Below are positions 1,804-25,800 of a DNA stretch of 64,000 nt, piece after piece. Each line of letters opens with the position of its first letter. Within the stretch, counting starts at the first letter, position 1. Below the pieces are notes generated by a model. The model had not been told where the DNA came from, did not search any database, and saw only the letters and a list, made by a program, of their open reading frames with translations. The DNA is from Phallusia mammillata (Eukaryota): the NCBI GenBank assembly GCA_965637545.1, contig OZ281497.1, forward strand, positions 14,012,001 to 14,076,000, read 5' to 3'. Both the position numbers and the translations under genes were made by a program.

Positions 1804-4800
1804 TTAGCATGCGGTGCAAATTTGGCGTGTGATGCCGCTGGGAAAGCTAACGCATCTGCAGTTGGCACAGTTACTTGCTGGTGTGACACCTAAATAAAAA
1901 AAGACATTGTTAGAATAAAACAATATCAAATGGAATCGTATCTATATGTGCTTTATTTTATTTTGTTTTTTTTGATACCGTTCTTCGAATTTTAACCAAG
2001 TTGTTTTTGTTAAATGTTGAACCCCCAGAATGGAAAGGTGTCTCAATTTTTTTACCTGCAAGACGCTTGGCAACAGCCGCTGTCACTGGTTTTCCGGCAG
2101 TTCGTGTTCTTGTAGCCAGCTGTGGCGCGCTCCACACAGAACCATCGTTTACAGATGACAGCATGTTTGAGCAGATGTCCGTTTGCGAAACCAGCACCTT
2201 TAAAGCAAGATTATCATAGTTTCACAGAGTATTTTGACAACAATATAATTTACGGAATATTCCTATTGAGGACTTATACCGCATGTGAGTTGTGTAATTA
2301 CCTGATTAAGTTGATCAGCAATTGCAGTTGGATTTTCGCCTCGGATCGATTTTTTAGTGAAGGCGCCGATTTTGTCATAACCGACAACATAGTTTTTGCT
2401 ATTGACCGGTTTGTTGGTGCGAGACGCTTTGGTTTCAATTTCCTGGTTTCGAATCAGATGGAAGTTGATTTCAAAATTGTTAAACATATCAACAACTTCC
2501 GACTGGTCGATCTGCAAAAATTTAGAAAAAATATATTAATGAAACAGCGTAAATTTAGTGGGCATATTTCGATGGGAGAAATTGAAACAAAAAAGTGCAT
2601 TATATTTCTGTGATCAACTAAGCTTCGGACAAAACAACTTTAACATGTTAGAATTGATTACCTTTGGTGATGTCTGGCAATCACTGCAAGTCAGCATCAC
2701 AATGTTTCGTTTTGATGCAGCCTTGAATGGATACATTGCCGCTTGCTTCAAGGCTTCAACGGCAAAAGCACCAGAGTTTGTAGAGGAAGTCGATGGTTCC
2801 ACAAACCGTTTCAACATCTTCTCCAAGCTGTGTGCAGTTCCCATCAGCTGACCGTCAATCGTCACAGTATGCATGTTCACACCGGTTGAATCATACACCA
2901 CCAATCCGTAGCGAGAGTTCTCGTCACCAGCTCCAAGCAGACGGAGAAGACGTGGAAGAGTTGCACGCAAGATGGTGATACATGAGCCACCTTCCATCAC
3001 GAAAACTGTTTCCATAGCAACTGCGGGTTCGTCCACTTCTGTTTGGCACGTAACGCATGATTGCGGTGCTTCAATCTTCGCTCCTAGTTTTTCACACTTT
3101 ATTCTGTGGAAAAAAGAGGTCTCGTAAATTTAGAAATGTACATTTTATATTTTTAAACAACGCTCTCTCATTTAAATTCTACATCACAATAGTCGCATTT
3201 CATTTTCTTACCTGTACGCTGTGGCCAAATCACAAGCCTGTTCTTGATCACAGAGTTGACGTCTGCATGCGTCCAAGTACGGTTGAGGATCAACAACAGC
3301 GAAGCATGCTCTCAAATCCGAATCCGATGATTCAAACATGGTGGCACAAACCTACATAAAGGTAAAACAACATTAAAATAAAAACACACACACACACAAT
3401 CAATATGTCACTAAGAATAATACTTACATCATTTTCACTGGCACAAGACGATGTAGATGTGGTTACGGTCGGACATGTAAGAAGGTTGGAGTCGGAAACA
3501 ACAGCCCAGCTATCTTGTTCTTCCATTGCGTCGTTACGTTTGTTGCCATTTACGTCAACGATGTCGTTCTCAGGTTCGTTGTCCATGCTTCCCATCAGAC
3601 CCGAAACGCGACCGTGGTAGAACGGACCAAGTTGAAGTTGGCAAACTATGTTGTTGGTCATTGAGCAAGTTAGAGTGACGTCTCGGTGTTTGGCCACAGC
3701 AACAATTGTTGAATGTGTTCGGGTGATGGCCACTGTGTCATCTTCGTATGGAAGATGGACTGCTTGAGAATTGACGCTCACCTGTAATCAATGGAAATTG
3801 TTTAACTTAGTGAGGTTTAATGGAGCAGCAAATTTTCATATTTACATGCAACTAGAAGAGTGGCTTTCTGATATACTTCCATTTTATATATTCTATACGA
3901 TATTTACCAATTTACTATACACACCATTTGATCTACACATATGATTGTTTTTGTAAACAAAAACTAATGGGTCCCCACACACGCGTTTGTGCGGATTTAC
4001 AGTAACAAATGTTGTGGTGATTTTTACATTCTTAAGGGCAAATTTTTAGAAAGCATTAACCCAACAATACAAAAAATTGTTCGTATTCTTTTTGCACTAT
4101 TATTGTCATGTAATTACAAAATTATAAAAACGTAACAAAGACTTAAATCTAATCTCTTGCTTTGACCCAGATATAGTCCTCCAAGGTCGGGTTTTGAACA
4201 CAATTTTTTTTAGAAAGCTGTAACAGTTGTGTTACAGACACTTTAAATTTAAAAGCAATTTGCTACAAGTGTATACATAACAAATTGTTTTTCATTTAAC
4301 TTTGTTTCGCAAAACGAGTACCATTGACCTGTAGTAACCTCTCAGGGTGCACACGCCAAACGACTGTTTGACCTTTTGACACCGTTTTCAATAGCACGCT
4401 GTCATTCGTGTTCAACAATACTGTTAAGCCTAATTTATACATGCCTTGAGTATTGACTCCTAAATTGATTGTCAAAAAAATGCTACGTTATGAAGAAAGT
4501 TCTGAGCTGTGTTTGTAATACCGACTAGTTGACCTTAAGTAACCCGTGATCATGCGGCGGCCAACCTGACAGCGAGCATTTAAAAAAACACTTATTTGGC
4601 AAAAAAGTCAAGGTAATTTTTTCATCTTAACTTTTATTAACAAAGTTTTTCTTGACATATACAAAACCGAAGCACGGTTATTAGGCTTAAATTACGTCAT
4701 AGGTGTAAAACCTTCGCCAAAACTAAAAATGTGAGTGATAACTTAATAAAACGACATAGCATTGCTGTGCAAAACAGCTGATTTCTAATTACTGAAACGA

Positions 4801-7800
4801 CGTCTCGTAAAACGTCTGTCCGACGTCAAGCTGAGCCCTCCCGCTATCGTAAACCATTGAGTTACTCTCTTGGTACTTCTGCCTACAGTGTCTTTCTTGA
4901 CCAAACGAGCGTTAGACACATTTACGTTTCGGGGGCCTGTGGGTGAACCTCTGGGTCATACGGGGTCAAAATTCACATGGACCATCTTTAGACCAATACC
5001 TATAATGTGTGTAAATTTGAAAAAGTTTAACCCATTCTTTCTTGACCAAAACGTGGAAACAATAGCCGCGCTAAAAATTTCACGTTTTGGGGTGCTGTGG
5101 GTGAACCGAGGGATCAAAGGGGGTCAAAAGTCACATGGACCATCTTTAGACCAATACCTATAATGTGTGTAAATTTGAAAAAGTTTGAACCATTCTTTCT
5201 TGACCAAAACGTGGGAACAAATCCGCGCTAAAAATTTCACGTTTTGGGGGGCTGTGGGTGAACCGAGGGATCAAACGGGGTCAAAATTCACATGGACCAT
5301 CTTTAGACCAATATCTGTAATGTGTGTAAATTTGAAAAAGATTGAACCATTCTTTGTTGACCAAAACGTGGGAACAAATCTGCGTTAGAAAGAAAAAAAG
5401 AAAAAAAGAAAAAAGAAAAAAGAAAAAAAGAAAAAAAAAATATAGACAAAAACAATATGTGTCCCCTTCAGGGAAGGGGACCCATAATGAAAACGACAAG
5501 GACTCATTCGTTGTAAATTTACTACATTATATCAGTTGGGGAAAAAGCTTTGTGTGTGTGATTTCACTACTCACCAAGTTGTTGGAATGAATTTGAAGTG
5601 TTTTCGAACTTCCATCGGCGTTCTTGGTTTTGAGAAGATACGAACTGGCACCCTCTGGTGTTCTCTGCATTACCAGTGAGAAATTGCCGTCCAAGTAGTC
5701 TTGAGATAGAAGATGAGCGCAGCGAAGTGCTTCCACGTCATAAACCTTTCCATCGAAAGTTACTATTTGCTTATTGTTGATCACTGATGCATAAGCCGGG
5801 AAGGGAGGAACACTAGTTTCCGCATTCCACTCTGCCATCCACCTGTTGAGTTGTTGTCAGTTAGCGATAGTTGTTTTGATTCAACTAATTTGAAGATTGA
5901 TATGAATACCTGTAGTAACGATTGCGCATGTTGAATCCAAGCATTTCCCGGATGACTTTGGTAGCTACAGTTCCAGCAAGCCAATCTCGCACAACGTTCG
6001 CAGCAGGGGTAACACCTAAAGACATGATTGTGTAAGATGGACTTAACAACATTTTGGGTGTTCATATGTTACTCAATCACTTACCGAAGCTTTGTGTAGA
6101 ATACACGGTTGGGAAGTTGATCAGAAGCTGCTCAGTGCCGAAATAAACAAGTCTGCTGGTTGGTGGAGTTGATCCTGTCACAAGCTGGTATAACTTGCGA
6201 TCAAGTGTGTCGATCTTGTGGTTAACAATCTGTACAAAGTTTGTGTTTTAGTGTTATCGAAACCTTGACCACGATATATATTGTTAGCTTTCGTATCGAA
6301 TAGTTTTTTCACCCACCTCATTTGCATACTTGACAACCATCCAACCCAACTTGGTCTGCCCTGTTGTTCCGAACAAGGATGTGGCTGTTCGTTCCACTTC
6401 TTCCTTCAATATTGTGATGAGGCTATCATAATACGCAGTTCGTAGTTGATCCAGAGGCATACCTTTATTAAAAAACATTCTGTCACAAAAATCACGATTG
6501 CGTTAAAGTCAACAATCAGACAAATTGCTTACCGATTTTGGAAAGCAATTGTTGGATTTGTTGGTTCTGATCTAAATAACTGCTTTGAAGGTTAGATGTC
6601 TGAATGTTTCTGACAGAAAGTTTCATCCAAGTAAAAGCTTGAGTCATTTTGTTTTGAATAGTATTCATGTAAGGTGTCTAAACAGATGTTTTGTTATTCA
6701 TCTTGCACCAATGAAAATATGTTTCAGTCTCGGTGGGCATGTTATACTTACCAATGCGTTTGTCGGTACATTTTCACTAAAAAGGTTTACAATTTGCGTG
6801 AAAGCTTCTTCAACGGTGTCCAAATCCAACACGACTTTAGACAAGGATTCGCGTCTTGACCTAAAAATATATAGTTGGTATTAGTGGTGAATTTGGCATT
6901 CGGTTTGCCAGAACATTGGATTGATTCACACCTCAATTTAAGTTGCATCCAGCCTTCTGCAGGTCGCGTCAATGAAGCAAGTGCGAGATCGGTGTCTTGG
7001 GGTGCCTGAGTTCCAACTGGTTCTTCCAGGAAGCATCGCACAAACAACGTTTCGCTGTTGCTTCTACCCATGATCGAAATATCTCCAGCATCGTGTTCTG
7101 TTTTAAACAACATCTTTCATTAGATATTTAACTAAGCAAAAATTTCATTTGAGGGAAAACATTAACAAGCATTTACACACAAGCCCTAAAACTAGTGATG
7201 TACCGAATCGGCGAAATTTCGATTCGGCCGAAACCGAATATTCGGTGGTTTTGCCGAATAAATTCGGCCGAATCAACCGAATCATTTATGACGTCACGCG
7301 AAGTCGTAAGCTACGCGTTTGACATGAAAATATAAGTTTATCTTCCAGGCAATTAGTGCAGAATGGTTGTGTTTCGTCCCTATTTTAGTTCTGTGGGGTT
7401 TAACATTGGCTCAAGCATGATTGCCAACCTGACAATGAATTACTGATTAGTTGTCTGCAGTGGTAAAAGCGATAATGTGTTAAAAAAGATAATGATTGGC
7501 GCGATTTTCGTTGGTACTATGCAGAAAAGACACGTTTAACGCTTTAAATATGTGTTCGTAAAAGATTCGGTTTCGGCCGAATCGCAACAAATTATTCGGC
7601 CGAAACCGAATCTTTGCAAAAGTGGCCGATTCGGCCGAATAAATTCGGCAAACCGAATATTCGGTACATCTCTACCTAAAACATCTTTTCCTAGATAGGC
7701 TGAGACCAATTTATGTGATGCGATTTACGTAGGTCTTACTTGTTGAATATCCCGAACTGAGAGTCACAGAATCTGAACCGACAAGTACAGTTTGTCGCAG

Positions 7801-10800
7801 ATGTATAGCAGCAGCTAAATCAGTGGAAGACACATAACGCGTTCCATAAACGTCAACGCTTCTTTCGAAAACAGTCTTGACCGGTTCGAAGTACGGCGAC
7901 AGAACCTGAAAACAAATAAATCAATAACTTAAATCATAAAAACTTCGGTGCTTAAGTTGATTTGCAAATCGAGTTTTCAACATACTGTCAGTTCATTTCG
8001 GTCCATTACGACGTTGTCGTTCCACTTCAATCCAAATTCTTCTGGTTTAAAACCGTACTTCGCAATTACGTACATAGCACGGGATCCGCTCGACTTGGCG
8101 TATGACGCAAGCAAAGCATATGACAAGTTTTTACCGACGCATTCCATAGAAACCTCAGCGGTGTAATTTAGTTCTACAGAAACACAAACATAAAAAAGTC
8201 AGATATAATAGTTATACATATTTGTCTTGCTGTCTTACCGTTTTCATATGTGCCATTTTGAAGAACGAAAGACAGTGTTTTGTCGTTGTCAGTGTTGTCT
8301 CCACGCCTTAACATGCCGCTTACTCCATACAGAGTTGTATCATAATCCTTCATGGCTGACATTGTTACCAACAAACCCTAAAATACAAAAACGGTTAACT
8401 TGAATACCATGGCAAAGTTGCAATGCAACGACAGAACACATTATACGAACCTCTACCATCATATCCCCATTTAACGTGAAAGTCGTATCAAGACGTCCAG
8501 TTTCTGTTTTATCGACAACCAAACTCATGCGAGAGTTTTGACTGACTGGCATATTTGCAACAAACAAGTCCTGCAAAAAAAATTCAAATTGTAAAATCGG
8601 TTACCAACGAGGCATAAAAATGATAAATATTTTTATTACTAATTTATGCTTACCGCAAATGGTTGCTGTGTGCTCATTTCGATGGTGTGGTAGTTCTCCC
8701 TCCTTGCCGACCCTTCAGCAGTAAATGCAAAAGTGTTTGCACCACTGGTTGCATTTGCAGATATTGTTGCTGTATCGGCCGTCTTCTTTGCAGTCATGTC
8801 CAAGTAAGCGGGCTGCATAGAAAATAATTTTAAGTTATTTACTAAATCTGAAACTTCGAAAATGAAAATTTTCGTATTTACCTGGTTAAGTTGTGGAAAG
8901 ATTTCTGCGAGTTTCACTGGCTCAACAGTAAACTTCAAATTGTAACCTTGACGAGAGTCGAGTTCGTTGTCAAGGGACACAAATCGTCCTAAATGGGATT
9001 AAAAATGTTAAATATTCAATTCAAACGTTTCGCAAAATAAAAAAATAAATCCGGCAACGCACCAGATATGGAATCAGGATCAGCTTCATTAATCGCAGTT
9101 TTTGCCCTAAAAGAAGTGGTTTTGTCTTGACTGGTTACCGAGCAAGAGATATCCAGTGAACGCAAGTCAATGCCTTCGAATGGTTGTTTGAGCATAATGT
9201 CAGCCTGGGAAAATGCAAAATAAATTTATACACCTTGAACACCTACAGGCCGAAGAAAGGATTAAGTGCGACTTACCTGCAACACTCCTGGTTGAGATGC
9301 TGCAAAACGTTGTTGGGCAATGATCTGATTTTGATCGTTGTAGCGAACTCGCCAGTCATTGCTCACATGGGTACTAGACAGTTCCAAGTCGCCGTTAACA
9401 GCTAACTTCGATGGGAGTTTGGTAGTAAACGGATGGTTCAACTCAGCAACGAGGCTGTGTGCACCATAAACGCGAGCTGGGAAACCACCGTCGTACTGTA
9501 CACTGGCGTTGACAAGTTTCATCTCACCACTTGCATCACTCCACTCAACGGAGGTGTCAACTTTGGCACTATCGGCGTATGTTACTGCTGATGTCTTCAT
9601 GCTCACTTGTTTCGACACTCCGGCCGCTGACAATTCTTCGATGTTGTGATCAAGACTGAAGTCGAAAATTGTGGTGCTAAACTCGCTGTCAGTTTCACGT
9701 CGCTCCACGGCAAACTGGGATTGGCCATTTCGGTCTCCAACGACACCCAACATTTTCAAGCTTCTTCGTGCTGTAAGCGAAGTGTCTAGTTGGGATGTGA
9801 GATCGACGAACTCAAATTGAGCTTCGAGCATGTTGTTCTGGTCGTTTGTTGGGAAATTGTTGTTTAGCAATTCGATGTTTTGATGCGTTAGAAGTGCACC
9901 AAACTTAGTGCCAACCGCTCCCAGGCCGCAGAAAGTTGTGAAGTTCATCAGTTGGTCGCCTGTTGCTTCGTATGTTGCGTTAAGTTTCATTGTTCTGCCG
10001 AAAACATCATCATTCTCAGCGTTGATCGCAAGCACGCCTACCGCATTTTGTGGAATAATATTATTTAGTGATTCCAAACTCTGTCGATATTTGAAAGTCG
10101 TTTGATGGCTGAAGTCCGATTGTACGTCTTTTTCGATTTCAAACAACAGCGATAGCTTCTCTTCTTCGTTTGAACGCACATCAAGCTGATAGCTGAGAAG
10201 TTGCTTGAGTTCTGTGTCAACGACCGTACGCTCTTGCATCCAATAGTTGTTCGGCAAACCAAACCTATCAGTCATTAACGTGACATTGTGTTGAAGAGTG
10301 AGGACATAGGTAACGGACCATTTGTCGACATTTTCGTATTGAATGTCAATGTCACGGACAGAGATGGTGATTTCTTCATCTCCCATTTGAGCATTGAGTT
10401 CAGCTTTCAGTTCTCCAGATTCTGTTTCATCAATCATTACAGAAATCATTATCGGACCCGATATGTAGTCTTCTGGGATAAATGACGGCATGTCAAGTCT
10501 CATTGTGACGTCAATAATAGGATCAGGATTGGATCGGAAGCCAATGACCGATTTGTTTCCTTGAGCTTCACCAAATTCGACTTCCAAGTCAAGTCCGCTT
10601 TTTTCCATCGACGCGCTATCCCTAACATTGATAACATAACTGGAACCGAAGTCAAGCGACAACTGCAGGGCAGATCCTTCTTCCTTGTCAAATGCCAGGT
10701 TGAAAACTTGAGCCCCGTTAAAATCAACTTGAGCTTTGCCAGTTAGTTGTCTAATAGCAGTCCTTTCCATCGAAGTAGCGACGGTCATGCTACTTGGCAC

Positions 10801-13800
10801 TCCAGCTTCAACGAACATTGGAATATTGTTTGTGAAAGAAATTGTGGTTTCTAGATTTCCGCGGTTTGGCCAGTCCTGGAATTCGAAGTTGCCAGTGTGT
10901 CGCACAACAGCTGTTTCGCTCTCGCCGAGAGAAAGAGTTAGCGCTGCATTGACCATTGGTTCTTCACTGATAGATATTTCTCCCCTCAGGGATGTATCTT
11001 TGGGATATGGAAGCTCCAAATTGTGTTTGGTAGAAATGTCCATTCGGTACACTTGTGGAGACTTTTCCTTCATCATGACAACTGATGTGGAGAAGGTATT
11101 TTCATCAAAGAAAAGCGTCATATTTCCATCAACGCTATTTTCCTCAGTTGTCAGTCCAACGCTCAGTCGGTTTCGCATTGGAAGACCAAGTATTTTCCAA
11201 GTTTTCATGTTGTGAACAAGACCGGATGCAAATGCGTAAGCTCCTTCACCACGCTTTGAAACATCCATTGTCGCTTCCAGTCTGCGAAGATCTCCGACAT
11301 AAGTCAGGTTATAACTTTTGTAAGGGAAACTTCCTGAGATTTTGCCGTTGATCTGAGAAGCGTACGGTAGGCCTGTGATCAAAGTAAGGGTCACCCAATC
11401 GTGGTCGGATGTAAGATCAAATGAATCTGGAGTTAGCGTCAAAGTGCATGTGTTGCTTATACCGGCGGCGGTAAGATCGTACGAGTAAACAGTAACCGTG
11501 TTGTCATCACTTGAAATCTCCTTGTAGGCGTTTAACTCGAAATGCGCGGGTACGTACATACTGCGCAAAGCATCCGAGTCGTGACTGAAAGTCAAAGTAA
11601 ATTCGTCTCTGTTGGTCGCGGCGTTAAATCGTTGTTGTACAAGCATTTGTCCCAACTTTGTGTTTTTCTTTTCGGCGTTCGAGAAGATAGAGAAACTGAA
11701 TCCACCGTCAACTTTTGTACCACTAGCGCTGACTTGGATATCACGGGGAATGCTGTCAAGTTCTTGTAGGTTATGGTTCAAAGTAAACTGCACTTCGATT
11801 GAGTTGGCCTTGTCGCCGCTTCGTGCGTTGCTTAATGACACACCAAACATCTTCTCGCCTTCGTTTACATCCAAAGACAGCGAAGAATCGAAAATGTAGT
11901 TTCCGATTCGGGTAACGTTGAATTGAACATCAATTGTTTTTGGAAGAACACTCCACATCGTGAACAAATTGTTTGTAAACAGGTATGAAATATCCATCCT
12001 ACCAAGTGGATACTTGTCACTTCCAATACTGTACACATTCATATCTAAGACGCTCTTGGCCGTCCAGGTTTGTTCATCCATCGACAATGCACCTTCAATT
12101 CCGAATATGAGATCAGCGTTAGATGGAAGAACAAGTTCCATTGTAGCACAAACAATACGCGGAATTTCGATGTCCTTGAAATTGTGATTAAACTTTGCAG
12201 TGATGTTTGTCACAGGCACAGCGGCTGTGTACGAGATATCGGTGTTGATTTCATTTTCCATATCATCTCTTGTTAAACTCAACCTGGCGCTGATTGCAGA
12301 GGTGTATTTCTTGCCATTGATTGAAAGTGAGCAAGCCAATTTTCGTGAAAGGCTTTCAGTGACTTCTTGCAGACTGGCAAAGTGCAAACTTAACACACGC
12401 AAGTCTTCATCGACAATGTATCCTGTGTTAAAAGAGGCCATTTCTGCATCGTTGATCATAAGGTTTCCACCCAGTGAAGAGTTGTAAACATTGATCGTGT
12501 CGACAGTTACTTTGGCTCTCAGAGATCTTGATACACTCAACCAATCCATGTTTACATTGTGATCAGCACTAAATGTAAGATGGAATTGATTTTGAGGAGA
12601 ATCCGTTTCCAAAGTTTTGCCCCATGTCGCATGAAGGTTAACTTCCATAGGACTTTCAGGAGAGGCATCTTGGATCAATGTGGTCTGAAGACGGGCATTA
12701 TTGGAAATTGTCGAAGCCATAATGGTAATTTTGCCACCATCAAACATGATTCCAATGTTGTTATGCAACTCGCCTTTAACAGTGATGCTTCTATCTGTTG
12801 ACAAACTGTACGAAGCCAGAGCGTTTGCATTCTTCTCACCAAAACTTCCGTTAAAGCCTGCAGAACCTTGTTGGGAATTCACGTTGAAAAACAACCGAAG
12901 GTGGCTAACTGGTGCCAGATTAAGTTGCTCTGTCAGTTGTTTGCAATTGTGATTCAATGAAATCACAAACTCGCTGTCGCTATTTTGAGCATTTTTCCCA
13001 ACTGTGGTTGCAAAGTTAAAGTTTGAATCAGATTTGCTCATTTTTAGGGTAAGTGTTGTACGTTCTTCCTCCACACTCTGAATGTTCCAGCTCAAGTCGC
13101 CATTTCTTATCACTTGATCCAACACGAAGTTATACCCGATCATGCCAACCATCTTTGATTGTGAGTGCACGTAAACGCTCATCTGTGTTTTCATTGGAAG
13201 TTTAATCATCTCCATATCATGGGTAAGCTCAGCTGATGCTCTTGCGCAAGTCTCATTTTTCAAGAATTGCAGAACAAGTGTCATCATCTTTGACTCTTCT
13301 GATTCAGTTTGTTGCATTGTTGAGTTCATTTTCAGGCTCGATTCTTCGTCTCCAACATTCAAAACAATGTTGCTTCTGTACGCTACAGGAATATTGTACT
13401 GAGACAAAAAGTCGATGTTGTGTTGCATGTTGGTCGCTGTGAAGTACAAGAAACCCTCATCATTTTCGGTGATCTTTCCATTGCTAACCAAAGAAATACT
13501 GTTCTTACCAAAGCGGCAAGCAATGTTTGACGACGGACTCTGCCAGTTGTCCATTGAAGCATCAACAGTGAGTTCCATGCTCTGAGCAACGTCACGCGAC
13601 AAATCATGCGTGAGGTTCATCTGAAGATTTACGCCGGATGTTGATAATCGTGGAATGGCGACGTTCATTTCGAACAGTTGTCGTGAAACCCCGTTCATTG
13701 TAGATCGAGCCATAACCCTGCCACTCATTGGTTCCTCAGTCATCTGTGCACTCATCTCGAACTTTCCAACTCGACTGATGCCCCAGTTCTCGGTGATCCA

Positions 13801-16800
13801 TGGCACGCTGTGTCGTCCGCGCACAGTAAGCGTCAACATGGAAGGTTGCAGTTTAACGTTGACGGTGGTTTGAAGAGATTTTTCGTCCAGATCCATTTCA
13901 ATACCGCCAGTCCATGATTGGGGTTTTGTTTCGCCACAGAATATGGTAAGCACATTTTCTCGCGGTACGTTGGTCAATTCGCGAATATTGTGGCTAAATG
14001 AAAGTTGTAGCTCGTTTCGTACGTTGGTGGGATCACGGGTCCAAGTAACAGTAACATCAGCGCGGTTGTTTTCAGCAGGTTGAATTGAATATTCCAACGC
14101 GGTTGATAATGACTCATCGCTCCAAAGAAAGTTCACAGAGCCTTGGACTGAACGCGGAACACCCAAGTGCACAACTACTGTTTGCTCACTTTCCATTGAA
14201 ATGCGAACGTTTCTTGCTGCATTCTGTAGAGTAAACGAAACTCTAGCGAGCTTTTCGCCCAGAGTGACATCGGTGCTGATAGTGTATCGTTCGTCCTGTT
14301 TTCTGTATGCCAAGGCAATGCGCACTTCTTGTGGAACGCCCATTTGAGTGAGTGTTTCGAAAGTCTGCGCCAATGACAGCGTCATTTCCAGACGTACTTG
14401 CTCGGTGAAAACTGTTGAAAAGCCACAGGTGGCTTCGATTCTGCTTGTTTCTGAATTTAAAGTTTGGTCGTATGAAACGGTAGCAGAGTAGTCTTCCAGC
14501 CGAACCTCAAAGTTTGTTTCCAAAGTTGAGGGAACGTACGCTTCGAGCAGAGGTGAGTTTCGGATCTCCTGCTCGAATTCTACTCGAAGTGACGTTGTGG
14601 TTAAGGTGTATGAAGTGGCTGAGCGGAAAGAGCAGTCATCTCCAGTTACTGAAATGCTCGCTCTGATTTCATTCCATTTATTTGGTGCTGCGATTGATAC
14701 TTGTAATTGTGTGACACGTGGAATCGCGTAGTCTTGCTTTAAGTTATCCATGTCGTGACTGAACTGTATCGTGAGGACTGCGCTTTGTTCAGCTTCGTTC
14801 CACTCAGCAGCTATGGAGCCAGACAAACTGTTTTCCGTGTCGTCTTGAGTGACACGCGTTTGGAAAGTCATTCCGTTTGTGGTTGGCGTTGTTTCCACAG
14901 AAACCTGTTGAGTGCGCAAGAAACCGTACTGTTCAAGCAAGGCTCCCATGTCATGACCTGCATTGACTGACAGTCGCAAAGATGGCCGAACTTCTGAGTC
15001 AGAAACAACGACATCTTGGATCGAGGTTTGCAATGTTGCGTGGATCTGTTTGTCGCCAAGTTGAACCAAAACCCCGGTATTTAGGCTTCTAGAGTTATCG
15101 GTTTGGGCATTGTTGTAAAACAACGTCGCTTGAAGATGTCTAGGAACTTGGTACTCATCAGCCCAACGTGCAACGTCATGGTTACTACGAACAACGAGCT
15201 CATTGCGTCGTGTGTCCCTGTTAAACCCGTATGTGCCCTCAACCTGAACGTTTTCGGTTAAGCTGCCGTACTGCAATTGCAAGTCGCCGCGATATCCATT
15301 GGCAATTTGCGAAACGTCGCCAGTGATGGCAATGCTGGCGGGAAACTCTGGCCACGTGGTTTGCAAGAGTTCTAAAGATTGGACGACTGATCCAGTCACC
15401 ATCCACTCTGCGTCACTTCTACGTTCTTGTTGATAGTTCAATTCCAACGACTGATCGCCGACAGAACACCGCATTGTCAGTTCCGAAGTTTCACTGTTTA
15501 AGTTTGCATTAAGATTGACATCTACGGATGAAGCAAGCTGGTACCAAACAGAGCTTTCGTCGAGTTCCGAGGTCATGTCTTGTCGCAGTGTCGCAGTAAA
15601 ACTGTTGGCATTGTTACCGGTTGTAGATTTTCTGGTAGTAATTCTCGCTGTGTTTTGCTTGCGTCCGCGCTGTGTACGAAGTTCACCTTCATAACCGGAG
15701 TTGCTGTTTGAGCCTCCAGTAATTGTAATTGTTAACTGGTCGGACATAGGAAGATTTGGAACGTTGTGGTTGTTGTCCATGCGAACCTCGTATAATCCGG
15801 TACTTGGTTTGTTAAGCGTAAACGTTGTGTTCACCACAAACCTGTTTAACTCGGTTTGTAAATTGACTTTCTGCCTGTCACCAGTCTTTTGATAAGAACC
15901 GCTGATTCGCAAATGTTCTGGAACTTGCATTGATGTCAACCAATCGAAGTTATGGCTTTCGTACAAAGTAAAATCAGCGTATTCGCCATTCTCACTGCTG
16001 GTTGAAACAATTTGAGTGTTGAGCACCTTAGTACCGAGCTTGTAGTTTCCAACCATGTCGCACCGTTCGTTGTTTGTCCTCTTTACAGAGAACGCCATCG
16101 CAAAGTCTCGAGGTATACTGTAGATCAGTTCCAGGTCACGCCAAGTGTGGGAAAGTTCCGTACGTGTTGACCATTCACCTGTCAGGAGGGTGACGTTAAG
16201 TCCGCTGTAGACATTGAAAGTGTTTTCTCCGAACACAGAGGAAAGTGATGCATGAAGGCCGGTCGGAGCTAGATTTCCTGTAACTTTGTTATCTATTACA
16301 ACAGGTACGTTGTACGATGAAAGTTCGGGAAAGTTATGATTGACTTTGAATGATGCAGTTGCTCCGTTTCGAGCCCGGTCGTAGATGTAGAATGCTGTGG
16401 TGTCCAAACATTTTGATTCATAGCATACTTCCATTGACATCTGTTGTACGTTTGAAACACCTTGGTAGAAAAGCGAAATTTGGATATTTCTTGGAAAACC
16501 TCGGTTTATCAGTTCAGGAACGTCTTGTACCAAGCTAACATTCAAAGCGTGTTTCTTGGTCACAGTAACGGTAACAGTGTTCACTTTTCCGCCGTTGCGG
16601 TTGACAGTAATTTGGAGACTGCCACCCTGCACTTCAGTGGTTGGTTGCAAAGAAACAATTGCATCAAGCGTTTCTGGAACTCCAAGCTTTATTAGCTGCC
16701 TGAAGTCCTGATTTATGCCAAAGCGAAGCGCATATCCCTTCACATCTTCTGTGCCCTCAATTTCGTTTAATTCTGTAGTTATGTCAAATTTTGAGTGGCC

Positions 16801-19800
16801 AAACCAGACGGTGGATCCGACTTGGAAAGCAGGCAAGACCTTTCTCACCATGTAACGAGCTGTAATCTTCATAGAGTTTGGAATAATTGCTTCCAAAGAC
16901 TGAATTCGGTGGTTAATGCTGAAGCTTAATTCGCGTTGGGCGCGTTTTGATCCTTCTGAGATAATTTGGTTGGTTGTCCTGAACACGACACTCTGCTCAA
17001 CCACATCTTGCGACCATTCGATTTCCAGCATCTGGTTGTCCACTTCAACTTGAAGTTGTGCACTCATTCTGTTCGTACGCATCACCCCGAAACTTGTAAG
17101 TGAGTCACAATCATGTTGTAGATTCATTGATAACTCAACATCCATGTTGGTTCTTCTAAGCACCACCGACGTTTCGATTACTGCTACTTGGTCGACGTTG
17201 ACTGTCAGTGAAGGGCGAATCTCTTGTACTGCTTGAAGCCATGAGTCCTCCTCAGGATCTTGTTTAACGAAAAAGTTAAATATCACTTCTGAGTCTCTGG
17301 GAATGCCAAGCTGGTCCAGGAGAAGCGGAATGTCGTGAGAAAACTGCAATGTCCTAGAAAGCTGAGTTCTATCCGACAAAGGAGCTTCGCTGGGATAATG
17401 GATCATGATTTGTGCAAAATGAGATTGTTGTTCCAGCATAAGTCGCGCCCGGGCGGTCATTTGATCACTGGCGGTTGTCAAACGGGTCGATGCCTGAAGT
17501 TCCATTGGATATCCAAGGTCCTGTGACAAATACTGGAAGTTTTGCGAGGTGATGTAACTAATCTCATAACGATTTTGTGATTGCTGTCGAATATTGAGAT
17601 CGATGTCGATGTGCTTTCCGTCACTCGTTCTAAAATTGGCAGAGTACATGTTTCGGTTAGTTTCGCCAGTTTCCGTGCGCATGTTGGCAGTTCCGTGTAC
17701 GGCGTCTGGAATGCCATTTGATCTAAGAACAGGAGCGTTGTTTGTCATTTCCAAAGCAACATCCATTTCTTCCTCGCCGGCGCGAGTTTGTCCTGCTCCC
17801 AACGAAAAGTGAAATTCGTTGCTTGCAGGGAAAATCAAACCAATGCTTCCATCCATACGCTTTCTGTCACGCGGTTTGGATACAGAAATCCTTCCTGAAA
17901 TCGGGATGCTTTCCAAATCTTCCGGGGCAGCAAAAAGGTTAAAGTTCACTGGATCACGATTTAGATCTATGACGTAACGCCATTGGTTTTGATAAGATGA
18001 TGGGTCGATCATAAGCGAGATATCAAAGTTGGTTTTCGAATCGTCAGATTTGGAGAAAAATTCAAATGTCTTCTTGCTTGCTCCCTCTCTCGTAAGAGTT
18101 GCCTTAGAGAGGAAGTTTTGAGGAACAACTGTAAGTTTCGGAAAGTTGTGACTGGTTCCAAACTCCAATTCTAGAATTTCGGTCTCGTCGCCTGGTTGAT
18201 ACATCACAGTTGCTTTGAGACCTATTTGCCGACGTCTGAACTCAACGTTAATATCAGTACCAAAAGTGTTGTTGTTGCCTGCAAGCAACGAAGCCTGAAC
18301 CTCTACTGCTTTAGGTATTCCCATCTTATCAAGTGTTGTGAAGGTGTGGCGAACATTGTAAATGAAGCCGTAAGTTAACGGATCGGCGTTGACGCCAATC
18401 TTACCCTTGAACCGTTCTTGGAATATAGCAAAGTCCCACCAAATACAGTAACCGCTTTGCATTTTTAATCCAAAGCTGATTTTAGTTGGAGGAGTATCGG
18501 TATCGTCAGTTTTGCTTGTGAAGTCCAAATTGTGTCGCATGGAATAATCAAATTTGTAATCATTGGTTTCCGGATTGAATCTGTACCCGGTGTTGAAACG
18601 GAAGAACTTGTAGGTATCGTCGATCCGAATTTCCATGTTACCCTTGGCGTAGTTCCACGGACTTATCTTACCAGTAAAGGTTCCCGACACATTGAAAGGA
18701 ATGTTGAAAAGCGTGTTTAGCGTCTCAAATGTATGCTGGAGACTGACTTGGTAGCTGTCTTGCACATTTTCAATTGGTGGAATAGAAAAATGAATGCTGA
18801 AATCATCACTGTTATCGTCTAGTGATACACCTCCTATGAGTCCAGCTTCTTGGTCCCCATCCTTTGCGTAAACCTCAACGTGTGTCTCAAAAGTTTCTGG
18901 CATTCCGTAGGACGCCACAAAAAAACCGCTGATGTCAGAGTTGCCGGCAAAGGTAAGTGACGTACCATTGCAGTTTAGTGATGCTGTTGCCCTTAAGGAA
19001 TTCTCAGCGCCGAAATTCAGTTCTCCGTTGGCCCAGAACCCGACATTGCAATCCAATTCCTCAATTTGAATGGAAGCTGACGAACGCTCAGGGATGCCAA
19101 GTTCGTTTTGCAAATACTGATAGTTGTGAGAAAACTGCACCACGAGCTTAGTTCCTTTGAATTGTCCGTTCATAATATCACGCTGGAAAATCGTCGCTTC
19201 AACGTGTTTGCGGTCGTCGTCAAACAGCTGGGACATCCTAACTGTGAATCCATTATTTACCTTGTGGATGTTAAACCGAATGTCGCTTTCCTCTGGCAAA
19301 CCTGCCTCGGTAAACTTGGGCAAGTTCTGATTAGCGGTCATAGTAAGTTCCAAACTAACCGGACTTCCATTTTCATTTTGCCTCACAGCGTTTAGGTTGG
19401 TGCGGATATACTTGTCACCCAAATCAACGTTTACAGACAAAGATGAGGACACGCTTGGAAGATCGCTACCAGATGCTCCCTCCATTGTCAAACTCATGCG
19501 AGTTTTCTTTGGGACCGACCATGTGGTTGTAAGCCACTTTGAATTGTGAGTTACAGCAAGGGTCATTTCATTGCGAATGGTGCCATCAGACTGACGGTCA
19601 GTATTGGTGCTGCCTGTGATCTTACCATGAATGGAGTCGACGCGATAAGTCAGTTGAACATTTCCATCATCAGGTGAACGCACAAAGACAATGCTCGAAG
19701 TTTGCGGAACGCTGAGATCGTTTAATGCAGCAAAACCTTGTCGGTGGTTGATGTCTAGTCTAAATCCTTCGGCGAGATCGAGGGAAATTTCTGCGTCACC

Positions 19801-22800
19801 TTCTTGTGCTCCTAGAGCCATGCGCAGGCCGAGGCCGTACTTGATCTCAGGATTCCAGTGTGCAGTAAGTACAGCTTCTGATAGAGATGGTAGTTGAAGG
19901 TCAGTATTGTGTTGAAACACAACTCTCAGAGAGTAGGGATCGACCGTTGGGTTTTCTGGTTTTGTTACAGCAACGCGTCCTGTCATTAGAATTTCGCTTT
20001 GACTGCTGATTTCCAGAACTGTTGAGGTTTCTTGTGTATCGCGGTTGATCATTCTTAGGTTTAACTGAACCGGTGATGGAACTTGCAAGTCATCCGTGAG
20101 GTAGGGTAAATTTTGTTGCATACGCATTACAATTTGAGGTTGCTCGGTATTTACGGATGCGGAGAGGTTGCAACGATATTGGTCATCCTCTCCCACTACC
20201 ACGTTGCCGCTGACAGAGTACTGAGGTTCTGCGTATTCTGCTGCATACTCAAAAACAACATTTTCTGGAAGAGCACGGAAAAACATTCGGGAAAGGTTTT
20301 GTCTCCATTTCGCGTTACCGGAACAGCGACTTGCTTCATTGGAGTCAACATTTACTTCCATTAGAAGATGTTCGTTATCGTCGACAGTCATGTTAAACAT
20401 CAAGCCTGACGATTCAGCAGAACGAGAATGTACACGAGCATGAGACACAAAGTTTTGTGGAAGCCCGATGGTCCATGGAATATTATACCGCATTGAACGT
20501 GATACATCAAAGTTGCTGAAATCGGTAAAACCAACTTGCATGTCGTTGAAGAAAAACACAGAATTATCTTCGAAAGTGGAAGGGCTGGCGACATTAAGTC
20601 TTGCTCCGAATTCGTGGTGCACGTCGAATGATTGGCTGATTGGACGGGCGTACACGTTGGCATCGATGTTCAGGTCAGTGGGAATGTACTTCACCAAGGT
20701 GTTTTCGTTATGATTGCATGATAACGAAAGATCTAACCTATTTTCCGCGCTGTACCATTCGCCATCAGCAGGAACGTGTCGGTTTCCCATTCCACTTATT
20801 TCAATGTACTTCTGGCCCTGCGTTGAGTCAATCCACTCCATTCTACAGATATTTTTTAAAATTAATACTTGAGACAACTAACAGCGCTTGAAATTGGTGT
20901 TAACAACATGATAACCGAAGTCTTACCTGGTAGTGAAGTTTCGACCAAACAAATGAGTATTTTCAAATGCATTGTTCGAAGTAGACTTCTCGTTCACCGT
21001 TTCACCGAAAAATCGCATTTCTTTCGCAGGATGCAGAAGAGTGAAATTGAACCTAAACAATATAAAACGTTTAAACCTGGAAAAGGAACATTATTTTTCA
21101 TTTGCATACCTTTTGACAAGCAGTATGTCTGGCATTACTCCTGTGGTCTGTTGGTTGATTGTAGTAGTCACATCCAATTGATCGTTCCATAAGCTCTTTA
21201 AAGTCGTTACTCCTATTTGGAAAGGCAGATTTATAGCGGGTGTAATCATAATTTATAGAACTATTTAAGAAACAGGCGTACTTAAACTCAACTTCAAAAA
21301 AGGATAACTTTGATAGAATACCTGTTACAGTAAAATCGTTTTCTGGGACCCATTCGGAGTCGGTTGTCCAGTCCGACGAAAAGAGGAAGAGGTCTTCAGC
21401 AGCTGGCAGAGGTTGAATAAAACTCAAATCGTACTTTAAAGTCCTTTCACGAGACACTTCCACAACAGCCTGAGGGCGGTAGAGATGCATAGAAAATCCA
21501 CGTTGGCGATCCATTGTGGTGATGTTGCTCACCATTTGAATCTAAACAGTAACAAATATTCAAACAACTTTAAATACACGATTATAATGATTAAATATTT
21601 ACAAAGTTTTTATCATAGCACACAATTATACTTTTTTATTTAAACAAGCGCAACAAAAAGGCATATACCTGTAGTCCACTGGCTTGACCAATAGCGTAAT
21701 TTCCAAACGACATGAGTTTTCCGGATTGGACGGTATTCAGTCGCTGCAAAGCAGACAGTGTACCCCATGGAGTTGTGACTTTAACTTGACCTTCCAGTTT
21801 TGTCTTACGCTGAGTGGATTCGTCCGAAGCAAAAAGGTCAAACAGAAGCGGATTCGAGTTTTCCGAATTGCTACATAACAAATGATATGAATGAAATTGA
21901 AAATAAACGTTTTGCAGAAGTATAAAAAACGCTTTGTTTACCTAAAAGAACCACTAAGAGCGGCCATCTTGTTTTGGTCAGTTGTCCAGTCGAACAGGTG
22001 ACGCAGTGTCGCCCTGTAGGAAACGTCATATTCCGGAATCGACAAACTCCACAATCCTTCTAAGTTGGCTTTTACCTCATCGGAAAGATTGGTCAAGACC
22101 TGTGCAAAGTTTAAGTAGGTTTAAGCCGACATGACAATTTTAGGAACCGCTGGTGAAGACCTAATACAAAGGTTGCAAGCTACTTGTAAATCACAAACTA
22201 CAAACACAGAAGAACTTGCTTAAAATTAGATAATAGAGCAGCATGCACCCACCTGTTTGATAGCCAACTTTCTGGTGTTTGACTTTTTGTCGTATTGTGC
22301 ACCGTAGTTAATTGCCAGTGATGAATCTAGTTGTTCACCCGATGAGCTGTGTTCAAGTTGGATCTTATGGTTAAGGGAAGGAAATTGCGAGAAGGCAGCA
22401 TCTGTTGATACGCTCCACTGACTTTCATCCTCGCTTGACTGATCAGTGAACTGCATCAAGATGAGATGCCAATTTAGTTTGATTGAATAAATTGAGAAAA
22501 TCAGATGTGAGTAAAAAATATTTTGTAAATCTGCCCTGAAAAGCTCTTAAACGTTACCTTGTGAGAAAGGGTTACTGTTTGTTGTTCCAGCCCAAACAGG
22601 GAGTAGTTTATTGTTAAGTGTGTGCGATCTCGACCATTCCTTCGTGAGCTTCGTACTTGTCCATCCATGTTACCAAAACCAGGCAGTTGGACCAGACCGT
22701 TTCCGTTGTAGGAAACGCGGTCGTTTTCCACAGTTTTCTCCGCGTCAGCTGCATAACGTTGTAACGTTAGACATGAAATGTAGTAATTAATACAAACTTT

Positions 22801-25800
22801 TTCAACAACTATGGTTAATGACAATTCCGAATTTTGATATTTGGCTTACCTTGTAATACAATAGGTTGTGTAAGAACATTCGTTACTTCCATACGACCTT
22901 CCATTTGTCTTCCCTCTGAGTAGGCAAACGAACCACTTGCTGTGGGTGGAGCATCTCTCAACAATGGTGTGATAACTTTCGCATTTCTGTTTTAACAAAA
23001 ATATATTGTAAATTTATCTTTATGCACAATATCTACCGTTTCTTATGCACAATTTCCTACCCATTCCAAATGTGTCCACCAGTTCTGGATGTCTCATACA
23101 AAAGACTTGCGTCGGCTGAATACGTCTGCATTTCATCAATAGTCACAACGATGCCAGCCCTCTTCTCTGTTTCTTGATTGTGTTTGTTGGCTAAAATTTC
23201 AAATCGGGTTAGCTAATAGAAGAACAGAACAAATTCAGACGGACATTTTAAAATTTACAAACCTTGCAGTTGCAAAGAACGATCTACTGTCGATAGTCTG
23301 ATATTAAAATCGTCCGCAGTAGAAGTAAATGCGAGATTTAATTCTCTGCTCCTATCAACTTGGGACCCGGGAGTGCCGATGAAGAACCGAGCAGTTACCT
23401 GCATGGATCAGATGTAATAAAACCAGTTGGAAGTTTACACACAGCAAAATATATGAATGTGTGTTTTACCTCATCAGGTATGGACGAAGGGCCTGCAGAT
23501 TGCCAGTTGTATCTTGTTTCCAGCAGGTAATAGCTTAAAGTCGGATCAGTTTTGCGGATTTCGAATTTGTAGTCGACAGGTCCAGCAAGAGGAAAGAACG
23601 GTCGCTCATCATCGGCGTTATTCGAGTAGCTTGGACTCGAAGACTCGGTGCAAACCTGCAGAGTTGGTACATTTTATGACTTAAATACTCGCTGTATGTG
23701 TTTAAATTTCATAAACAGAAAACAGCAAATTTGGGATTCAAATGCGAAAAATTATTTGTACCTGTATTCCTAATAGCTGACTTCCCGTCTCTGTGCACCA
23801 GTTGGCTGTGTTAATTGTTGTGGTTGGAACCAACGATGTGCGATCCTGGTCTTGTATTATAAAGATCTGGGATCTAAACAAGAACAAAATCTTGACGTGT
23901 TTGCCTACTTTTTAATTTTGCTCACAACAAACCTAAAGTTTACAACGTCCATGCGTTCTTGCGGGACGTCAATTTTTACGCGGAAGTTCTCTCCGTCGGT
24001 TAGTGACACAGTTCCGTTGACGTCCATTGAGGTGGTAAGTGTAGTTTGTAGGTCAATACCTGATCTAGAAGCCACTCCGATGTCGGTTGACATACTTGCC
24101 TTTATCTCTACAGTACCTCTGTAATTTAGAAGAAACCCCGTTTCACGTGAAGTGGAGTAACGATCAACTGTTGTTTAGGAAATACCTACCTCGGTTGGAC
24201 GTAGCCACCAACGTGGAAGCCTTGAAACAAAATCTTGTTCAAGTCAATCTGCCCTCCAAATGCAACGTCCATTGTCGATGCCCCAGATACTTTAAGTGTT
24301 AGTGGAAAACCAGCGACAGTTGGGACCGTTACACTGCTATCCAACAACATACGACTATGTTGCATTGAGTATTCAGCGCCTGAAAATAATCAAGCGTTGA
24401 AAACAAGAGTTGGAGTAATTCGTAAATGGACGATGTTTACTTACCAGTGGCGAGATTGAATAAAGTTTTCAGGCCACCGAACCAAGAACCAGCATCGGCC
24501 TGTTCAGTGATTTCTTCACCAAACTGTTCAAATACCATTTCATTGCCGAACATGCGCATGAAAATCGATGCTGAAGGATCATCCTCCTGAAAACACAAAA
24601 ATCACGTTAAAATTGAAACCATAACGATTTAATGATCCAAGCTGAAACGTCTACACACCTTAGTCAAATCATTTTGTCTGGTTTTTATTTCCTCTAATTT
24701 TCCGTCGTATTTTGTGACAGCTTCACGTTTCTTTCGTGAATTGGTTTTGTCGATTCCAAGAACTGTTGCCAAGAAGGAATTTTCTAAAGCAAAAAAGGTT
24801 CAGTCAACACTTGAACCGATCTATGTTTGCAATTTAAGATAAAAGGTGTTTAATGCAGTCAAAATGAGTCTGTACGAGAAAGGAAAAAATATTCTTATCA
24901 TGTGTAATTTAAGTCAGCTTTATTTAAATCACATCAAACTTGTTTTTCTGAACACTTATGACCATTTAAATACCAACATGACATTTACCTTGAGCGGCTG
25001 GTCCGATAACTTTTTCTAAAGCACGTTCGACTCCCTGCACTCTGCCTCCGACTTCCAACAAGTTGAAAGCTCCGCCAAACAAATCAACAGTTAGATTGAG
25101 TCTTGCACTTCTGGGGATGAACGATTTTGTTGACCACACCAGATCCCCATCAAGTGCAGCACCGATATTCAATGTTTCTAATCATCAAAACAAAGTTAGA
25201 GGTATGTTTTTTGTGTTTACCACAAAGACTCAAGTCAAAAATACCTGAGAAAAGCGAATTCTCGTAAAAGGACGAATACTTCCGTTTGTCCTTACTGAAC
25301 TTGTCCGTCAAATTGCTGTTCATGAACAACGCACGCAAGTATCCTTTCAGTGGGTCAGAGGACGACTTTACTTCCATCACGTGATTCCATATGTACGAGC
25401 CAACCTGAAAGTTAGTTCAACATATTTTAACAAATAGAATACATTGGTCAGTATTTTTTACGAAAAACTTTATTTTAAGCAATTGCCTATTTCTAATTAT
25501 ACTGTTGGAATTTTTAAAATGTTCTTGTTTCAACCAACCTGATTGACTTCTTCATTTTGCATCAATAGGAAGACATAACGAATGAAATCTGCTGATGGGC
25601 ATCTCATCATAGCGCTGTACGCCGCAATTCGTATTTCCGAGTCTTCCTGAGAATCTCCTAATACTTGTTTCATCGCAGATCGCTGCCGACATATTTTTTG
25701 TTAACTTTTTCCATTATTTTTGTGTTGGCGATGTTCAATTCAACTTACGTCTGCCTGGCAGGTGAGGCGTCGGAAAGCATTCATGGCTGCTAAGCGAATG

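Follow-up and report, generated by a model that had tools for sequence, protein, structure and literature searches.

The 64,000-nucleotide stretch of the genome of the ascidian Phallusia mammillata analyzed here (contig OZ281497.1, positions 14,012,001 to 14,076,000; hereafter, the window) is free of N and harbors on its reverse strand an LLTP (large lipid transfer protein) gene, in which a single giant exon is placed among many small ones (Table 1). The longest open reading frame (ORF) in the window, located at 9262-20877 (-) with 3,871 codons, contains the giant exon, which is preceded by an AG acceptor (...TGTAG) and followed by a GTAAGT donor. Its length and its AG/GT boundaries agree with the exon and the 3,855-residue translation that an earlier note, made from the letters of the window alone, had placed at 9277-20842. 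The gene encodes P0001, a 6,559-residue Phallusia mammillata protein with the database name 'Uncharacterized protein LOC100186072', and the exon translation was found to be identical to it at 3,828 of 3,857 residues (99%). Whole-protein analyses were carried out on the database protein P0001 rather than on a spliced model of our own, and statements on the exon are given in window coordinates. The 29 amino-acid differences between the window and P0001 over the 3,857 residues, as well as several single-base differences among the sequencing runs X3, X11, and X12, are consistent with ordinary polymorphism in Phallusia mammillata.

Table 1. Features of the LLTP locus in the window; residue numbers are those of P0001 unless stated otherwise.
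Feature	Position in window	Strand	Basis or remarks
Whole LLTP gene, many small exons and one giant exon, encoding P0001	1807..29573	-	Colinear tblastn pieces, residues 9-6559
Exons of the N-terminal lipid-transfer module, including RKKR at residue 714	23060..29573	-	Pfam and tblastn mapping
Exons of PF21013 (LOC400499 family), residues 1115-1419	21263..22991	-	Pfam and tblastn mapping
Giant exon, residues 1545-5401	9277..20842	-	11,566 nt, ~3,855 codons
Array of ~65-residue units of four predicted strands, residues 1691-5303	9568..20406	-	Regular expression, iterated profiles, cross-validation
Motif example HNYQYLQNELGIP, turn between predicted strands 3 and 4	19090..19128	-	Regular-expression match, ORF residue 584
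Tile 2, residues 2404-2940, including slots without a profile-detected unit	16657..18267	-	Folded by AlphaFold2
Tile 1, five consecutive units, residues 3010-3329	15490..16449	-	Folded by AlphaFold2
C-terminal exons of VWD (6032-6181) and C8 (6222-6286)	2284..5844	-	Pfam and tblastn mapping

Domain analysis of P0001 with Pfam revealed Vitellogenin_N (PF01347, residues 39-590, E 1.7e-80), Vit_open_b-sht (PF09172, residues 623-909, E 2.8e-54), and DUF1081 (PF06448, residues 943-1035, 37.2 bits with a cutoff of 25), along with PF21013, the 'LOC400499 family' (108.2 bits vs a cutoff of 27, model positions 30-336 of 527), VWD (PF00094, 58.6 bits), and C8 (24 bits). The first 1,000 residues matched apoB-100 (9bd1_A, E 1.2e-43), lipovitellin, and MTP among the PDB sequences, and the first 17 residues are hydrophobic and, by inspection, signal-peptide-like. 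These matches support the assignment of the gene to the LLTPs of the apolipophorin/apoB kind, which is in agreement with the protein class suggested in the earlier note. Within the apolipophorin branch, P0001 belongs to the PF21013 family, and it is as yet uncharacterized. A furin-like motif, RKKR, is present at residue 714, near the position at which insect apolipophorin II/I (apoLp-II/I) is cleaved. A second furin-like site, RSRR, was seen at residue 5796, upstream of the VWD, C8, and C-terminal region. The giant exon itself gave nothing better than E 0.15 with Pfam and no match among the PDB sequences, and a word-indexed homology search with the whole exon recovered only P0001 itself.

The giant exon is transcribed and spliced as predicted, and spliced RNA contigs span its 5' boundary. 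One 5-kb stretch of the exon was fully contained in several small runs resembling transcriptome assemblies. When aligned on 17600-23500, contigs of X1, X3, and X12, from three studies, continued unbroken from 17600 to 20842, where they spliced, and skipped eleven GT..AG introns (CT..AC on the forward strand) of 57-153 nt; run X11 corresponded to the unspliced genomic form. The introns of the 5' part of the gene (window 20843-23465, -) are very small, and the spliced contigs show all of them to be GT..AG. Of the 20,620 nt of the X1 contig, 12,455 nt lie 3' of position 17600, a length that fits the 8,323 nt remaining in the exon together with 3,474 nt of further coding sequence and an untranslated region, and hence an uninterrupted giant exon; the continuity of 9277-17599 in the mRNA is deduced from this length arithmetic and was not directly observed. 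Runs X9, X10, and X16-X19 (guessed to be RNA, with the same species label) contained little or none of the exon, while it was complete and of high word depth in other runs, which points to expression limited to certain stages or tissues.

About 59 slots of a ~65-residue unit, the copies of which are very diverged, make up the exon as a tandem array. A periodic motif had been noticed in the exon translation by eye, and the regular expression [HQ][NDTS]-phi-x-x-[LMW]-x(2-6)-phi-P gave 25 matches in it, as compared to an average of 0.24 and at most 3 matches over 2,000 shuffles. An iterated hidden Markov model (HMM) seeded on these matches, with its threshold set higher than any score reached by 20 shuffled versions and one reversed version of the protein, converged on 37 units, spaced start to start by 56-77 residues or by about two, three, or four times that distance. 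As the seeds had been picked by the motif, a half-versus-half cross-validation was carried out, in which the profile from units before residue 3400 found 12 units after it and the converse profile found 16, each above the best of 51 decoys. The shuffled decoys lose the local strand periodicity, while the reversed decoy keeps it and scored at most 2.6 bits. When the profile was rebuilt with units of other species, 38-42 units were found in Phallusia. The 3,613-residue array thus amounts to ~56 slots of 65 residues, and the whole exon to ~59, with 37-42 units recognizable. Autocorrelation of single dipeptides (HN-type or phi-P) peaked at lags of 62-64 and did not rise above the shuffle maxima because the unit length varies.

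Pairwise identity among the units averaged 14%, with a maximum of 33%, and showed no dependence on distance along the array. A repeat at the DNA level was not found, as Tandem Repeats Finder returned three trivial rows and the repeat-family search one 49-nt two-copy family of 71% identity. The low identity, the absence of a distance effect, and the absence of a DNA repeat together indicate that the amplification is old. When the 37 units were scanned singly with Pfam, no family was matched by more than one unit (best E 0.03), and the unit profile gave nothing below E 0.5 among the PDB sequences, i.e., the chance level, apoB not being matched. A description of the unit was not found in the literature on LOC400499, on tunicate and Ciona LLTPs, or on internal repeats of apolipophorins. 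The claims of the earlier note on the repeat therefore held up well: all twelve of its quoted example motifs were found, its count of about 40 copies by eye compares with the profile counts, the profile-detected units score above the shuffled and reversed controls, and its view of an ancient amplification without a DNA-level trace, possibly of an unannotated repeat family, agrees with the above results.

The anatomy of the unit was read from the column statistics of an alignment of the 37 units (A1). Each unit starts with a segment of strictly alternating hydrophobic and polar residues, which is followed by a tight turn rich in D, G, and N and by a second alternating segment. A variable polar loop then leads to the third alternating segment, which ends in H or Q (37/37) followed by N, D, or T (34/37). 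The end of the unit consists of phi-x-x-L (L in 26/35) and G/N-phi-P (P in 31/37), the fourth alternating segment, and a polar turn. The conserved element comprises 17 columns (A1 51-67) between segments 3 and 4. The four alternating segments with G/D/N turns that had been described by eye were thus visible column by column. Windows with a beta-amphipathic pattern cover 47% of the exon residues vs 18% in the shuffle, and alpha-amphipathic windows cover 15% of the exon vs 24% in the shuffle and 37% in bovine apoB. The beta-amphipathic signal was equally strong in the stretches without a profile-detected unit. Together with the structural models described below, the columns support the unit of about four amphipathic strands and a short helix-Pro insert of the earlier note; the insert, a predicted turn, separates strand 3 from strand 4.

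Two tiles of the array were folded with AlphaFold2. For tile 1, an alignment (A3) of 54 non-overlapping five-unit blocks from Phallusia and related proteins was used, and the model (predicted local distance difference test score, pLDDT, 81.2; predicted template modeling score, pTM, 0.68) showed 20 strands of ~10 residues each, with short helices after the third strand in three of the units and one more near the C-terminal end. Tile 2 was predicted with a pLDDT of 67.4, the first 385 residues being mostly above 70, and showed a short helix after every three or four strands, a pattern continuing through the slots without a detected unit (tile residues 66-206). Foldseek searches of the PDB placed apoB first for both tiles: tile 1 matched apoB100 on low-density lipoprotein (9ea7 and 9e9r, probability 1.00, E 7e-3, template modeling score 0.36), the next rows being OspA variants with single-layer sheets, and tile 2 matched 9bde_A, the middle region of apoB100 (E 3.2e-4, probability 1.00), followed by 9e9r, 9ea7, and 9coo_A (probability 0.97-1.00, with 9e9r and 9ea7 at 1.00). 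With VIA-align, for which full apoB chains are too long, the comparison was made with the apoB fragment 9coo_A and gave a Z of 12.9. At the level of these predicted models, it is established that the belt region is a long up-and-down antiparallel amphipathic meander of the apoB-belt type, and the very long sheet anticipated in the earlier note is thus predicted as continuous meanders, with the apoB-100 belt as their best solved match.

Because the beta units are long, repeated, and each provided with a short helix, as in the repeating-beta-groove (RBG) proteins, the array might instead form a lipid conduit of the VPS13/ATG2 type, which the earlier note had named beside a large particle. In the ESM Atlas, the first row was a cluster of chordate PF21013 proteins. 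The curved sheets similar to LptD that were also found among the rows would be in favor of such a conduit. However, VPS13, ATG2, and other RBG proteins were absent from the 50 best rows of the Foldseek PDB search of either tile, both of which the apoB belt headed, and the signal-peptide-like N-terminus, the LLT module of a secreted protein, and the VWD/C8 tail do not suit a conduit of this kind. Membership in the RBG family was accordingly not assigned on the basis of the fold matches and the secreted-LLTP domain context, and we regard a conduit as highly improbable.

To follow the distribution of the unit, the profile built from Phallusia units only was searched against 1.84 billion representative proteins. 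The 23 matches comprised vertebrate proteins, metagenome ORFs, fragments, and a few unrelated repeat proteins. The vertebrate matches (turtle, eel, opossum, frogfish, and killifish) were 3,300-3,900 residues long and contained Vitellogenin_N, the open beta-sheet domain, and PF21013. The metagenome matches were ORFs of 3,500-3,700 residues on eukaryotic contigs, at least two of which (P0006 and P0007) are themselves giant exons. Giant single-exon ORFs were located at L002:10001-21145 (JGI metagenome 3300027611; 3,714 residues) and L001:10001-20701 (ENA ERZ25067590; 3,566 residues), and the metagenome giant ORFs hold 8-20 copies of the Phallusia-type unit. On both sides of P0006 lie small exons for pieces of Vitellogenin_N or the open sheet and of VWD; BLASTP did not match it to P0001 at E 1e-5, although the unit profile matched 13 of its stretches. 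For P0007, only a weak VWD piece was called downstream, and the ORF itself begins with a PF21013 match. Three weak matches among the 23 were rejected as relatives since they showed no LLTP context and no regular-expression match, namely, P0024 (Elusimicrobiota, 4,693 residues, E 7.7e-4), P0017 (exact 84-residue period), and P0019 (exact 168-residue period); in all probability, these beta-rich repeat proteins are unrelated.

The N-terminal half of P0001 served to retrieve a panel of 58 LLTPs, which was scanned with the Phallusia and the clade-wide profiles. Detectable units numbered 19-28 in Clavelina, 6-9 in Styela, and 8-15 in the vertebrate PF21013 proteins. Among the 51 LLTPs outside the clade of tunicate and vertebrate PF21013 proteins (insect apolipophorins, apoLTP, mollusc, annelid, tick, and hemichordate proteins, and apoB-100), nearly all had none and no protein had more than two, each near the threshold; this absence is one at the sequence level only. 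A tree built from the first 1,100 residues by a quick LG+G4 search, with one long-branch outgroup as its root, grouped the three tunicates with the vertebrate PF21013 proteins in one clade with a support of 97 in the Shimodaira-Hasegawa-like approximate likelihood ratio test (SH-aLRT). The sister group of this chordate PF21013 clade consisted of apoLTP and the apolipophorin-like proteins of protostomes and hemichordates (SH-aLRT 96), and apoB fell outside. The Clavelina lepadiformis protein P0034 aligns colinearly to Phallusia residues 2-4309, and its 33.5% identity there is much higher than the 14% between units, so the array is older than the split of these ascidians. P0034 jumps from the equivalent of Phallusia residue 4309 to that of 5082, ~770 residues or ~12 units being missing. 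Either the Phallusia lineage gained this stretch (P0001 4310-5081, about window 10237-12552, -), or the Clavelina annotation has a gap or gives an isoform here. The region that separates the aligned N-terminal end from the C-terminal one spans ~4,400 residues in Phallusia, ~3,100 in Styela, and ~2,000 in turtle, indicating that belt length varies about twofold within the clade.

These distributions bear on whether the array descends from a duplicated module at all. The belt could be real and its repeat convergent, if long amphipathic meanders drift to similar strand-turn patterns; the mean identity of only 14%, the fact that neighboring units are no more alike than distant ones, the loss of any DNA repeat, and the apoB and insect belts, which have the same general fold and lack the motif, would all be compatible with such drift. 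We consider this unlikely, as the specific 17-column element occupies the same place of the four-strand register in every unit, half-trained profiles find the units of the other half, the Phallusia-only profile finds units in other tunicates and in vertebrates, and the scanned belts outside the clade do not converge on the unit.

Among the known systems compared, the vertebrate PF21013 LLTPs (turtle, opossum, eagle, shark, and teleost; 3,300-4,000 residues, uncharacterized) share architecture, unit, and clade with the protein. Their N-terminal ~1,400 residues are ~27% identical to P0001, and the VWD/C8 end is 22-30% identical; they differ in that the tunicate belt is roughly twice as long (~4,400 residues in Phallusia vs ~2,000 in turtle). 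Functional literature on this vertebrate family was not found. Of the ascidian orthologues, Styela clava P0035 (5,041 residues) also has the units with a belt ~1,350 residues shorter than that of Phallusia, and the Clavelina model P0034 is without the VWD end. The apolipophorin-like proteins of protostomes, among them insect apolipophorin II/I and apoLTP, have Vitellogenin_N, the open beta-sheet, DUF1081, and VWD in common with P0001, whereas they lack a PF21013 match and showed no units at two profile sensitivities. The insect apolipophorin II/I proteins of the panel are about half as long as the Phallusia protein (3,383-3,391 residues), and the mollusc, annelid, and apoLTP members are 3,600-5,000 residues long.

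ApoB likewise has a single giant exon for most of its belt. ApoB-100 shares with P0001 the N-terminal LLT module and the continuous amphipathic antiparallel sheet of ~10-residue strands (predicted for Phallusia), a mechanistic resemblance and not a family membership. The two belts have no detectable sequence similarity; moreover, apoB-100 carries long amphipathic-helix inserts (37% alpha-amphipathic in the bovine protein), whereas no large ones are seen in the Phallusia exon (15%), and the periodic conserved H-N...phi-P element and the VWD/C8 tail are found in Phallusia and not in apoB-100. As Phallusia also branches outside the apoB clade, membership in the apoB family was rejected on the grounds of the helical inserts, the VWD tail, and the position in the tree. 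The apoB-100 belt contains 120 strands in 1,774 residues and measures about 61 nm by 4 nm (PMC11839476), as compared to ~235 strands predicted for the Phallusia exon.

A different role is suggested by the egg coats of ascidians. An 'ApoB-like/vitellogenin-like' protein is reported to be the most abundant vitelline-coat protein in Ciona, and C-terminal vWF-D and CT fragments of the Halocynthia 'vitellogenin' are reported to be bound to the egg coat and to bind sperm proteases (PMC9265791). The array could therefore belong mainly to a structural or adhesive egg-coat or clotting protein (self-associating beads or a sheet), with lipid carriage being secondary, and the VWD and C8 domains of P0001, with the furin-like RSRR5796 upstream of both, would be in keeping with this. 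The processed vWF-D/CT 'vitellogenin' of Halocynthia and P0001 may belong to the same gene family. Nevertheless, the Halocynthia and Ciona reports concern C-terminal fragments and not the belt, the proteins described in them are only possible orthologues of P0001, and the belt has the amphipathic signature and the fold match of a lipid-facing sheet. A mainly structural or adhesive role is thus distinctly improbable in our judgment.

On balance, we consider it probable, at roughly 78%, that the product of the giant exon is the lipid-binding belt of a secreted LLTP of the apolipophorin type in the ascidian Phallusia mammillata. Several observations weigh against this assignment. VIA-align ranked outer-membrane beta-barrels first (Z 14-16.5, root-mean-square deviation 16-19 A), which implies that the matched feature is a long meander sheet of a generic kind. 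With E-values of 7e-3 and 3e-4, the Foldseek matches are marginal, and the template modeling score reached only 0.36. The AlphaFold2 alignments consisted of non-orthologous (paralogous) repeat blocks and may favor a repetitive solution. The one-sided hydrophobic face is read from the alternation of residues in the sequence only, and the curvature of the sheet is likewise deduced; curvature and geometry predicted by AlphaFold2 in the absence of lipid are unreliable according to the authors of the apoB structure (PMC11839476). About a third of the slots are known only by their spacing, amphipathicity, and the tile 2 model. Finally, the lipoprotein particle, its lipid binding, and the cleavage of the protein are putative.

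Elsewhere in the window, the second longest ORF (536 residues, 53205-54815, -) had no Pfam match, nor did five further ORFs of 155-207 residues between 33.6 and 60 kb.

By analogy with apoB, the N-terminal module of a belt-bearing P0001 would nucleate lipid in the endoplasmic reticulum, and the amphipathic sheet would then wrap the particle with its hydrophobic face on the neutral-lipid core. As the conserved element follows every fourth strand, the geometry of a meander would place all its copies on the same edge of the sheet, where the putative mini-helices might contact the phospholipid surface. Large amphipathic-helix inserts of the apoB type would play no part, being apparently absent from the Phallusia belt. 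With 16-16.7 residues per strand in the two models (~16.4 used) and the 0.51 nm per strand of apoB, the exon would extrapolate to ~235 strands and a belt of ~120 nm, twice that of apoB-100. A belt of this length may enclose a larger particle or make more than one turn around a smaller one, and the unusually large particle proposed in the earlier note follows from such strand counting alone. Cleavage at RKKR714 would yield chains similar to apoLp-II and apoLp-I.

The Phallusia belt is not a new kind of system. The 'undescribed system' suspected in the earlier note proved to be a known LLTP lipoprotein scaffold of a little-studied chordate family already flagged by Pfam PF21013; what is new is a legibly modular, insert-free belt of roughly double length, the belt fold and the public protein sequence being already known. 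We further propose, tentatively, and with considerable doubt that all its parts hold together, that the ~65-residue unit is a countable block that sets the length of the belt, and so the circumference of the lipoprotein, in chordate apolipophorin-like proteins, with single-scaffold tunicate belts of ~120 nm and a row of mini-helices along the edge. If this were true, the inter-end lengths would correspond to ~30 slots in vertebrates, ~45 in Styela, and ~59 in Phallusia, and the single-scaffold particles of tunicates would be the size of very-low-density lipoprotein or doubly wrapped. The edge of the belt would then carry a regular row of ~40-59 His/Gln-Asn-capped mini-helices, which could form a skirt that seals the phospholipid or, in yolk or endosomal compartments, act as a pH-sensitive switch for release.

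It was not until 2024 that the belt of apoB-100 was resolved, and the Phallusia belt bears on the evolution of such belts and on the relation of their length to particle size. In the Phallusia belt, the modular construction is still readable in the sequence, and the conserved turn element gives its register. The chordate proteins offer a natural series of belt lengths over a roughly twofold range, and the tunicate protein is linked to the uncharacterized vertebrate LLTP family PF21013. The simpler, insert-free belt makes work on its structure, and on the relation between unit number and particle size, feasible.

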